64,000 nucleotides of DNA, from the NCBI GenBank assembly GCA_039096225.1, contig JBBPEB010000007.1, forward strand, positions 868,001 through 932,000, in the 5' to 3' direction. Both the position numbers and the translations under genes were made by a program. The notes under the pieces were generated by a model. The model was not told the origin of the DNA, did not search any database, and was given only the letters and a program-made list of their open reading frames with translations. This DNA comes from Blastocystis sp. Blastoise. Its lineage: Eukaryota > Protista > Bigyra: Opalinata. This document shows, piece by piece, positions 2,220-11,051 of the stretch; position 1 is the first letter of the stretch; each line of letters begins with the position of its first letter.

Positions 2220-2234
2220 CACTATGGACATTTT
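2220..2234 (+). repeat. Left TIR of CACTA element
   Basis: CACTATGGACATTTT, exact reverse complement of 11037-11051. Confidence 0.9.
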
Positions 2235-2244
2235 TTCAGGTTTC

Positions 2245-2452
2245 TGTCAAAAGGTCCAACGACTTTTTTGTTTTGGTTTCCCCAGTGGTGAGCAGTGAAA
2301 ATTTTTAAATATGTAGCTGACAAAAGGTTATTTGATTTTTCTGTTTGGTTTCCCCAGTGGTGGAGCAGTGAAAAAATTTTAAAGGGTAGCTGACAAAAGG
2401 TCCAACGACTTTTTTGCTTTGGTTTCCCCAGTGGTGAGCAGTGAAATTTTTT
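2245..2452. repeat. Subterminal tandem repeat, ~3 x 73 bp
   Basis: CAAAAGGT...TTTGGTTTCCCCAGTGGTG(G)AGCAGTGAAA units start at 2248, 2321 and 2394. Confidence 0.9.
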
Positions 2453-2613
2453 GTCAGAGTTTCAGTGATTTTATAAAATCGAAAAGCAGTGCAAAAGTAT
2501 GACGCACCTTAAAACAATAATTGGCGAATAAAAATGGTTTTAAATATTCTCTATTTTTTCATTTATTGGCTTTTTTTATTCTTTTTGTGGTGTAATAATA
2601 AACGATATAACAA

Positions 2614-2621
2614 AACAAACA
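2614..2621 (-). promoter_or_regulatory. TGTTTGTT motif (Blastocystis-type downstream polyadenylation signal), candidate 3' end of the 2626-3460 transcript
   Basis: Plus-strand AACAAACA at 2614-2621 lies ~130 nt past the GC-richer part of the last exon. Short motif, could be chance. Confidence 0.4.
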
Positions 2622-8300: not shown

Positions 8301-9430
8301 GATAATAGGGATAGAAAGAGAAAAATAGGAAAAAAGATGGTTAGAAGAAAATAGAAAAGGAGAAAGAAGGAGAGATAGAAGGAGAAATAGAAGGATATAA
8401 AAGAGATTAAGAAAGAAGTTAGAGACAAGAAGATATAGATATATAGAAAGAAATAAAAGGATTAAATAGAAGATTAAGATAGAAGAAAAGAGACAAAATA
8501 GAAGTAGATATAACAATATAGAGAATGAAAGGATAGAAATAAAAATAGAAAATAGATAACTAGAACATAAGAATATATAATAATAGAGAGAAGGAGAGAG
8601 AGAAGAAAAAGTAGATATAAAGTGGAAAAGGAGACATAGAAGGAAATATAAAAGGAAACAAGAAGGTAGAAAGAGACATATAAGATAAAATAGACAGGGA
8701 CAGAGAGAAATAAATGGAAAAAGAATAAGGATAAAGATGGATACGAGAATAGAGAGGGAGAGAAGGAAGATTGAGATAGAATTATACAGAAAGAGGAGAG
8801 AAGGAAGATAAAGAAGGAAAATAGGGCAGTAAAAAAAAGGGAATCAGAAGGAGGAGAGAAGAAGTATGAGAAGAATAGAAAGAAGGAAGAGGAGGAAGGC
8901 AAATAATAGAAGAGAACTATATATATAATAAATAGTGATATAAATATAAATAAGAAGATGAAGATCTGAAAAAAGCAAAGAATTATATGGAGAAGAAGAA
9001 GAAGAAGAGGAAGAGGAAGAAAAGGAGGGTATACACTAATACATGTCGAGGAAAAAGAAGTATAGAATAAGGAGAAGAGGATAACAGGATAAAAGAAAAA
9101 GACATAACGAAATACAATGTAAATAGAATAGTGATTAAGAAAGAGTAATGAAAGAGTGATATAAAAGGGAAGCGAAGATAAGAGAGAGGTATAATTAAAA
9201 AAAAGAAAAATAAAGGAATTTAGATAGAAGAAAAAATAAAAGAAAAATGAAGATCTGAGGAAGATAATGAATCAAAGGGAGAGACAAGGATATAGGCTGG
9301 AGACAAGGCATAGGAAGAAGTAATAAAGAAAGAAGATGAAGAAATAAGGAGATAAAAGTGTAGAAGGAAGAAAATGAAGAAGAGAGAAGAAGGAATCATT
9401 TTGTGTAAGAAGAAGAAATAAAGAAGAACT
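5362..9430. repeat. ~4-kb polypurine(+)/polypyrimidine(-) low-complexity tract including (GAA/GAT)n and (GATA)n blocks
   Basis: Plus strand is almost only A/G with some T and very rare C. (GATA)n at ~7315-7425. Confidence 0.9.
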
Positions 9431-9926
9431 AGATAATAAATAAATAAATAAATAAATAAATAAATAAACATACCTAATAGAAAAAAATGAATTTGGTGAT
9501 GTTGAGTCATAGGGAAAGATAACCAACAGAAACAGTAGAAAACAACCTAAATAAATAAATAATAATAAATAAAAATATAAAAATAATGAAAATAAATAAT
9601 AAAATGAATTAGAATTCTAATTCAAGAAAAAAAAAAGAAAGTTAATAATAGATAGAATGAATATACGATAAGTATTTTATCATATAATATTACAGCAATA
9701 TAAAAAATAAAAAGATAAGAGATAATTATAAAAATAAATAAATACATATATACTTTGAAAACAGTTTGACATCATAGACGTTGTTGACATGGACTGAAGA
9801 GGACTCTTATAACCACGGACGAGCAGGAACCTATACATGCTAGAGAATGGGAGAATGTTAATATGGGTAAAGAATAAAAAATAGCAATATACATACAAGG
9901 GAACAGTCTGAAGTTAAAATGAGCTT
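9272..9926 (-). ncRNA. 5' exons of a putative spliced long transcript that enters the pyrimidine tract
   Basis: Canonical GT-AG bounded exons 9926-9897, 9830-9754 and 9546-9474, then an acceptor at 9430-9429 opening into the tract. Only a low-complexity ~90-aa spliced ORF (stop at 9272). Confidence 0.5.
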
Positions 9927-11036
9927 CTATTTTTAAAAATAAAGGCAAATAAAAATAGAATAAAAATAAAAAAAATATGTAACAAATGAAATATTTTCTA
10001 AGTCAATAGGCTCAATAGCGTATGGGTGTCTTCAGGTCTTAAAAGAAAAATCATTTTTGCGGGAATATCAAGAAATTCAAAAAAGTATATTTTCCCTCCT
10101 TTTTTCGCTGTCACTTTTTTTTAATATTTTTGACTTTATAGTATTAAAATCGATTCTTACAGGCATGTATAGACACTTTATACCACTTTTGAAACTAAAA
10201 ATCAAATATTCAAAAATGAGTGAAAAATCACAACAAGCAAGAAAAACAATTTTGTAAGCTGAGTATGTTGTGTATAAGTATGTCTAACAACAGAGATGAT
10301 AAAAACGCACAACTCCTCTTGGTTTAGGACATAATTATGAATTCTCTTAAAAAAGCTATTTTAAACCTTAAAACGATACCCTGAACTATAAATCAAGTCC
10401 TGAATGATATTCTAAAGTCATATTTTTAAAAACAGGTTTATTGACGATAATCAATAAACAAAAACAAGAGCTTCTGTTTTACTTTTCTTTTTTGAATTTT
10501 TAATTGTTTTGACTTTCTAGGGTAGTTGGCTAAAAGAATGCTGTCGTCTTTAGGCTAAAAAATTATGAATAAAAAAGTCAAGTCATTTTATTGTTTTTTC
10601 CTTGGGAAATCAAAAAGAAGAAATTTTTAGGTGTGTGTTGATTTAGGCTGTATAATGGTTTATATTGTAAAAGGACTTGACGAGAATGATTGAAATGATA
10701 ATATATCACTCAGAGAATACACAAATTTTAAAAACTTCTCACTCATGTAATCCATTCTGAATTATAGACTTCAGAGAAAAAATTAAAGTCTTTTTGGTTT
10801 TAAACAGTCATTTTAAATCATAAAACACTGTAAAATAGTCAATATTTAGAATGTCTATGATTATATAAATAAACAATATATTTTGTAGAGTTATTTTTAA
10901 GTTTTTCTCGTCAAAAAGAGAGAAACTTGACAAGTTGGCGGACACTCTTTTCTCGAGTTTAGGCCAACGTATTTTTGATTAAAAAACCCCAGTCATTTTG
11001 TTGTTTCTCTTACGGGAAATAGGGTCAAAAAAACAC

Positions 11037-11051
11037 AAAATGTCCATAGTG
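11037..11051 (-). repeat. Right TIR of CACTA element
   Basis: AAAATGTCCATAGTG, ending in TAGTG. Confidence 0.9.

Follow-up and report, generated by a model that had tools for sequence, protein, structure and literature searches.

An 8.8-kb transposable element occupies positions 2220-11051 of the DNA considered here, a very AT-rich (GC ~20-30%) stretch of 64 kb from contig JBBPEB010000007.1 of the gut protist Blastocystis sp. Blastoise (the window; all positions refer to it unless a contig is named). The element is bounded by perfect 15-bp terminal inverted repeats (TIRs) that start with CACTA, and the TIR sequence, CACTATGGACATTTT, has exactly two matches in the 64-kb window (2220-2234 on the plus strand and 11037-11051 on the minus strand; 0.18 expected). 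Directly outside stand the two copies of a target site duplication (TSD), TC at 2218-2219 and TC at 11052-11053, identified by reading the flanks and by comparison between copies. Inside the left end lie subterminal direct repeats (2244-2446, plus strand; a 73-bp unit in 2.8 copies with the core GGTTTCCCCAGTGGTG, by analysis of the window with Tandem Repeats Finder, TRF), and the CCCCAGT core of the subterminal repeat is also present near the right end. A first-pass annotation, made from the letters of the window, had described the TIRs, the 2-bp duplication and the subterminal repeats, and all three are borne out. Together with a candidate partner transposase encoded in an element with the same ends (see below), these are the marks of the CMC (CACTA/En-Spm) group, to which the element belongs. 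It is probably a non-autonomous member of a young CACTA family (CMC/EnSpm-type), moved in trans, with a non-coding cargo that includes one tRNA-like gene under selection and is otherwise baggage.

The same ends recur in ~30 copies throughout the genome (33,340,088 bases in 34 contigs were searched). The first 301 bp and the last 302 bp of the element each have ~30 genomic matches at 99-100% identity (the first 301 bp are 100% identical in 28 genomic copies), and the matched ends are always 8.4-8.8 kb apart and consistently oriented. Pairing the ends yields at least 26 complete copies, with flanks that are unrelated between copies. CACTA elements proper generate TSDs of 3 bp, and the Mirage branch of CMC generates 2 bp; in this family the duplication is a perfect 3 bp in 19 of the 26 complete copies and exactly 2 bp in the other 7, and no copy lacks one (0/26). 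The TC duplication of the window copy therefore belongs to the minority class. On contig C13 one copy has inserted within the TIR of another, generating the arrangement CACTAT / copy / TATGGACA with a TAT duplication. (The two copies lie head to tail at G000:C13:909068-926219, loci L021, L029 and L053, one of them having inserted into the first six TIR bases of the other.) Since the uninterrupted TIR of other copies represents the empty site, the C13 pair amounts to a comparison of filled and empty sites; the nested insertion and its TAT duplication establish that both ends belong to one element and that the family has been mobile recently. The first-pass annotation had allowed that the two ends might come from different elements, and had proposed counting TIR copies and duplications in the genome: the nested copy and the genome-wide pairing of ends dispose of the former, and the count is that of ~30 near-identical copies with distinct flanks and with duplications in 26/26 of the complete ones.

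A candidate source of transposase is present in the same genome. Pfam Transposase_21, searched in six frames, matches at four places, one of which (C23:375036-375410) sits in a 15.5-kb element, C23:362896-378401, that has the same TIR, a CAT/CAT duplication and the same subterminal repeats. The two elements have their end regions in common, 513 bp on the left (2220-2732, 85% identical) and 163 bp on the right (10889-11051, 90% identical and closing in the right TIR; both plus strand), and are unrelated in the interior. The transposase frame of the C23 element is open for 744 codons and matches PF02992 at 30.8 bits, above cut-off, in the six-frame search; scanned as a single protein, it matches Transposase_21 with E 1.3e-6 and, weakly, DUF4218. 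The C23 element is single-copy; identity to the next relatives is 55%, and their ends differ. There are many further CMC-type transposase frames in the genome. Because the ends are common to both elements, and because near-identical copies are dispersed, movement of the window element in trans is well supported, and the C23 enzyme or one close to it is the natural candidate for the mover. The first-pass annotation had proposed just such mobilisation and a search for an autonomous partner; the C23 element, with its shared TIRs and subterminal repeats and its open transposase frame, is the single candidate that emerges. In mechanistic terms, a transposase made elsewhere, for which this 15.5-kb relative is the best candidate source, would recognise the common 15-bp inverted ends and the 73-bp subterminal repeats, excise the 8.8-kb element and reinsert it with duplication of 3 bp, less often 2 bp, of target. 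(Two observations on the C23 locus are recorded in passing. A subfamily A copy ends 63 bp ahead of the autonomous element, within C23:353998-378401, loci L042, L061 and L062. A 271-aa frame within the C23 element, L061:1630-2442 on the plus strand, matches the piggyBac-type DDE_Tnp_1_7 family with E 2.4e-5, above cut-off, and represents a second, nested transposon or else cargo that was captured.)

The copies divide into subfamilies. Subfamily A, which includes the window copy, has ~10 members of 8.83 kb, with essentially no difference between them over 2.9 kb; the ~18 members of subfamilies B and B' are ~8.55 kb long and differ from A in the interior. Comparisons of the interior between copies rest on five relatives. 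When A, B and B' are aligned, blocks of 100% identity (2220-2820, 6720-9420 and 10820-11051) are found next to stretches of 63-88% (~3000-6700) and ~94% (9600-10800) identity, a mosaic that suggests that diverged elements have recombined or that templates were switched between them, not that decay was uniform. More distant relatives on C25, C33 and C34 keep the order of parts unchanged at ~73% identity; those on C25 and C34 (L067 and L068) have variant TIRs, CACTACGGACAAT and CACTATAAGCATTTT, around the same cargo layout. Either the cargo-bearing lineage would be older than the present type of TIR, or termini have been exchanged. The C34 relative also contains an insertion of ~100 bp with CACTG/CACTA-like inverted ends, located at the homologue of window position ~3314 in the predicted first exon (of the 3' unit described below), and this insertion looks like a miniature CACTA-type element.

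The interior is best read along the minus strand. A family-specific non-coding region (10888-9927) that may contain a promoter is followed by predicted 5' exons (9926-9474), a purine-rich tract (5455-9474; purines on the plus strand, pyrimidines on the minus), a tRNA-like element (5363-5291), an AT-rich spacer (5290-3444) in which a scan of open reading frames (ORFs) with Pfam, together with the identity profile, shows no recognisable feature and no ORF with a family match, and a predicted multi-exon 3' unit (3443-2630). There is no long believable reading frame. The 16 stop-free interior pieces match no Pfam family, so that hidden protein domains are absent within the reach of Pfam, and tblastn, for which two autonomous elements supplied 200 ORF pieces as queries, finds only the common ends and a few marginal low-complexity matches in the interior, which rules out decayed transposase. 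These results agree with the first-pass annotation, which had seen no transposase or other recognisable protein and had proposed the check for a decayed one.

A captured host gene has also been looked for. The two longest exon-bearing pieces, 3244-3498 and 9683-9913, were used separately for protein searches of the element's own genome in which all 61 and all 45 candidates, respectively, were scored at E up to 10; matches with E<0.01 are found only in family copies, and neither piece leads to a host parent gene. The matched frames are shifted or stopped even among close copies, and stop-free piece 9683-9913 has a stop codon in subfamily B. Within the reach of these tests, the interior appears to be neither decayed transposase nor a recognisable captured host gene. 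An origin as a Pack-CACTA element, in which captured host exons and introns have decayed beyond recognition next to an expanded simple repeat, would account for intron-like segments with the host donor GTATAT and AG acceptors, and for pieces that evolve neutrally (see below). It is nevertheless improbable: the searches with the two exon-bearing pieces return family copies only, no Pfam family is matched by the interior pieces, and the predicted exons are T-rich and A-poor, unlike the adjacent coding exons.

Small or unusual proteins are a still less likely product. Two have been considered, a hydrophobic peptide of ~85 aa from the predicted exon 3443-3300 and an acidic repeat protein from a 177-aa plus-strand frame, 5599-6132. 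The open frames exist, and sequence reading finds the frame of the former open across the first predicted junction in subfamily A as well as in the intron-less version of subfamily B. Open frames are, however, expected in pyrimidine-rich sequence, those at hand are shifted or stopped among near-identical copies, and no Pfam family is matched; the acidic ORF is absent from B and from L069, which have no plus-strand frame of at least 60-80 aa in the tract. It is very improbable that either protein is made. The acidic frame is, on its sequence, a by-product of the (GAA)n run that it overlies, and the long minus-strand frames of the tract are those that its pyrimidine-rich sequence leads one to expect (a search for contigs encoding two long ORFs of this kind has no match on record).

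The tRNA-like element (5291-5363, minus strand, with a cloverleaf at 5293-5361) is the part of the interior for which selection is best supported. It folds with -19.6 kcal/mol (z -3.96) into a 7-bp acceptor stem, a 4-bp D stem that directly abuts the acceptor stem, an "anticodon" stem of 8-9 bp with a loop of 5-7 nt, and a canonical T arm; it has GG in the D loop but no nucleotides 8-9 and no variable loop. The T arm doubles as a B box, GGTTCAATTCC, and this B-box-like sequence is invariant. Searched with a covariance model that rests on three variants from the family, the window contains one match and the genome 150 or more, and the exact 15-nt T arm has 254 genomic matches, as against 0 for the reversed control. 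Among 33 distinct copies, 95.3% of cells are paired (83% in shuffled alignments, 32-44% when the partners are slid), and 15 of 25 pairs have undergone compensatory change on both sides, a number that is reached by 0 of 500 shuffles. (Fitting of the alignment to the model works somewhat in favour of the structure.) Between subfamilies A and B five positions of the element differ, two of them forming one compensatory pair, and the element stands out as a local peak of identity between copies. Its most conserved part is the minihelix of acceptor stem and T arm, which covaries. Structured RNA under selection on its fold is the strongly supported conclusion, and the cloverleaf that had been read from the letters alone at 5361-5293 is thereby confirmed by fold, by covariation and by the 254 T-arm matches.

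What the element is not is also reasonably clear. Rfam applied to 2000-11300 gives no match at E<=1 (tRNA and mascRNA-menRNA included), ARAGORN finds no tRNA inside the transposon, and the "anticodons" that relaxed ARAGORN assigns to the tRNA-like copies vary between classes, with none conserved; a decoding tRNA is rejected on these three grounds. A larger conserved module around the element, suggested by BLAST, dissolved on alignment into AT-rich low-complexity similarity.

The surroundings of the tRNA-like copies bear on how they might be transcribed. ARAGORN reports one tRNA in the window, tRNA-Gly(GCC) at 18012-18084 on the minus strand, with T5 and T13 runs following it. The tRNA-like copies that lie outside the CACTA family have the same terminator layout: a run of at least five Ts starts 11-14 nt past the acceptor stem in 23 of 30 such copies, compared with 3 of 30 on the upstream side, where the flank is just as T-rich. 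The combination of B box and T-run points to an RNA polymerase III (Pol III) gene layout for the genome-wide family. Exact T-arm matches are often paired 4.2-4.3 kb apart (contigs C1, C3, C5, C6, C10 and C11), and on C4 they form an array with a 3.17-kb period in which a (TATATTA)n microsatellite precedes the tRNA-like element; these pairs and arrays imply that the same tRNA-like element is also part of another abundant repeat family, if not of several. In four other genomic contexts the element lacks an upstream pyrimidine tract, so that tract and tRNA-like element go together in this CACTA family specifically.

The tract itself (5455-9474) has the composition A 56%, G 26%, T 16% and C 2.4% on the plus strand (82% purine), and no second such tract is found in the window; the ~4-kb pyrimidine tract that the first-pass annotation had placed on the minus strand is there. 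The repeats that TRF distinguishes in it are (GAA)n, degenerate and 308 units long (5638-6561), (ATAG)n (6599-6725) and a near-perfect (AGAT)32 (7300-7426), all plus strand, together with cryptic purine-rich repeats. All five non-autonomous relatives examined have a tract, of 3.7-4.8 kb, and two autonomous elements have none; between subfamilies the tract changes fast through insertions and deletions. It is a degenerate microsatellite, for which inheritance and slippage suffice as explanation, although it may have a function as RNA or DNA.

The two spliced transcripts of the first-pass annotation are putative. The minus strand has G/C-richer blocks that are edged by AAG/GTATAT and TATAG/G, from which exons have been predicted by sequence reading. 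The 5' exons would be ~9926-9893, 9830-9754 and 9546-9474; those of the 3' unit would be 3443-3300, 3259-3214, 3149-3143 (doubtful), 3058-3002, 2937-2888 and 2799-about 2630, separated by introns at 3299-3260, 3213-3150, 3142-3059, 3001-2938 and 2887-2800. The predicted donors are GTATAT and GTACAT, a type also found in the neighbouring MFS gene. (The first-pass annotation had named an MFS gene as the right-hand neighbour of the element, and a piece at 11600-11806, plus strand, does match the MFS_1 family weakly; on the left, 716-1183, plus strand, is a piece of a gene for a protein with a MYND zinc finger, zf-MYND.) Downstream of the last predicted exon is TGTTTGTT, a motif associated with polyadenylation in Blastocystis (2614-2621, minus strand); a motif near the end of what was initially read as a 7-exon transcript is thus present as described. 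It occurs 10 times in the 64-kb window (2.8 expected), and the occurrence at 2614-2621 is altered in distant copies. The predicted exons are strongly T-rich and A-poor, unlike neighbouring coding exons.

Only the 3' unit has enough divergence between copies for a test of constraint, and its predicted exons evolve like neutral DNA. Raw divergence between subfamily A and the other lineages is 18% in the exons and 8% in the introns. The apparently faster evolution of exons is fully explained by G/C composition: sites involving G or C are 39% different in exons and 38% in introns, and sites involving only A and T are 5% and 2% different, respectively. Once G/C is allowed for, divergence of exons and introns is equal, so that no exon constraint is detectable. 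(The same very strong composition dependence of substitution holds over 2500-3800 in comparison with relatives, with ~39% difference at G/C-involving sites and 2-5% at A/T-only sites; such substitution can give AT-rich stretches the look of "conserved islands".) Only subfamily A has the 40-nt intron 3299-3260. Clean loss or gain of an intron has been considered, but TTATAG direct repeats flank the segment, and a repeat-mediated deletion between them explains its distribution equally well.

These observations can be put together in more than one way. The first-pass annotation had described the interior as an all-RNA cassette, and a working cassette of this kind can be specified: RNA polymerase II (Pol II) would transcribe the minus strand into a spliced, G-poor, polypyrimidine long RNA, RNase P would generate its 3' end at the tRNA-like element (as for MALAT1 and mascRNA), and a tRNA mimic and a second spliced RNA would be released downstream, to the benefit of transposon or host. 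All of the predicted RNA features do lie on one strand, and the part of the tRNA-like element that RNase P and RNase Z would see, the acceptor/T-arm minihelix, is the most conserved and covarying one; further, the tRNA-like element of the CACTA family has no strong Pol III terminator, the architecture persists in subfamilies with different TIRs, and splice-site Gs are kept. On the other hand, the defining 3'-end protection of MALAT1 is missing: the 30 nt upstream of the predicted cleavage site at the tRNA-like element are pyrimidine-rich, with no A-run and no partner resembling an element for nuclear expression (ENE). Moreover, no constraint is visible in the exons of the 3' unit once composition is allowed for, indels are numerous in the rapidly diverging tract, a pyrimidine tract is missing upstream of the tRNA-like element in the four other contexts, and most of its other copies do have the Pol III-type T-run. 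A functioning cassette of this design is accordingly judged unlikely. Of the cassette as originally described, the structured tRNA-like RNA under selection and the lack of any protein found stand; the idea of a functional RNA module throughout is weakened by neutral exons in the 3' unit, a tract that is degenerate microsatellite, and a tRNA-like module that is genome-wide and lacks the A-rich tract of MALAT1.

The preferred account, a non-autonomous CACTA element with one selected RNA gene among its baggage, assigns the pieces differently. Its cargo would be non-coding DNA, 8 kb long and family-specific, on which movement does not depend. One component would be the tRNA-shaped RNA gene, a member of the ~250-copy genome-wide family that is retained by selection on its fold and is most likely a small Pol III-type transcription unit, a substrate of the enzymes that process tRNA ends, or both. 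A second would be the 4-kb purine-rich tract, grown by microsatellite slippage. The third would be the intron-bearing segments, which may yield spliced non-coding RNA, the exons of the 3' unit being neutral.

Several findings sit less comfortably with this account. The single-protein scan of the C23 transposase frame scores 28.2 bits against Transposase_21, for which the curated cut-off is 28.6 bits. The CACTA-borne tRNA-like copies lack a T5 run (there are T4 in A and T3 in B, and the window copy has only T3 and T4 runs downstream), which makes Pol III termination doubtful there; these copies may instead be used within a longer Pol II transcript. The splice-site Gs of introns 2-5 are kept 8/8 in six diverged copies, whereas other Gs are kept in 69% (p about 0.05), a weak hint of some constraint on splicing. 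Finally, the cargo architecture of exon-like unit, tRNA-like element, tract and 5' region is kept at ~73% identity in relatives with other TIRs, and such retention across TIR variants fits useful cargo as well as it fits inherited baggage. In its most far-reaching form, the contrary interpretation would be that a transposon lineage is spreading a working non-coding RNA unit in place of an enzyme gene: a polypyrimidine long RNA would be cut at the tRNA mimic, and the mimic or its Pol III/TFIIIC site would be a module that is portable across transposon classes and might, for example, stabilise transcripts or shield from silencing. This is a speculative proposal, and we consider it rather doubtful.

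Transposons of Blastocystis have barely been described. A genome paper on tortoise isolates gives repeats only as bulk percentages (PMC12129017), and the literature searched contains no paper linking Blastocystis with CACTA elements; within the same literature, the first-pass statement that there is no described equivalent of the element holds. The family represents very recent cut-and-paste activity in a gut protist, with a clear candidate for the source of enzyme. The more unusual point is that a tRNA-shaped RNA gene with ~250 copies and strong compensatory change is carried inside a DNA transposon. If expressed, it could be a new kind of small-RNA gene, spread by transposons and transcribed by Pol III, or the protist counterpart of the tRNA-like processing signals of MALAT1 and NEAT1.

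Four known systems invite comparison. With tRNA-derived Pol III units (tRNA genes and the heads of short interspersed nuclear elements, SINEs) the tRNA-like element has in common an internal B box GGTTCAATTCC, GG in the D loop and, in most copies, an oligo-T stretch ~12 nt past the 3' end. It differs from them in the 8-9-bp anticodon stem and in having no conserved anticodon, no nucleotides 8-9 and no variable loop; it has also spread as a part of larger repeats, not as short, retroposed, tailed copies, and its CACTA-borne representatives are without the T5 run. With the mascRNA and menRNA of MALAT1 and NEAT1 it shares a non-decoding tRNA fold, with intact minihelix, downstream of a long and possibly non-coding region on the same strand. 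Unlike them, it has no Rfam mascRNA match and neither an A-rich tract nor a triple-helix partner upstream, its "anticodon" stem is long, and it belongs to a family of ~250 copies, mostly with Pol III-type terminators. Pack-CACTA and Pack-MULE elements resemble the window element in enclosing large cargo of exon-intron appearance within intact ends, but for the window element neither a parent gene nor protein similarity is found (two pieces searched in the genome; Pfam). The closest likeness is to the non-autonomous CACTA/En-Spm elements of plants (dSpm/I, Tgm and Caspar-type), which have CACTA...TAGTG ends, a short TSD, subterminal direct repeats, an interior unrelated to the transposase gene, and a mover in trans with the same ends and a Transposase_21-type enzyme. 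In contrast to these, the element described here resides in a stramenopile gut protist, its family has TSDs of mixed length (3 bp and 2 bp), and its cargo is neither a deletion derivative of a transposase gene nor a recognisable host gene; its load is a tRNA-like gene together with the 4-kb purine tract, both retained from one subfamily to the next.

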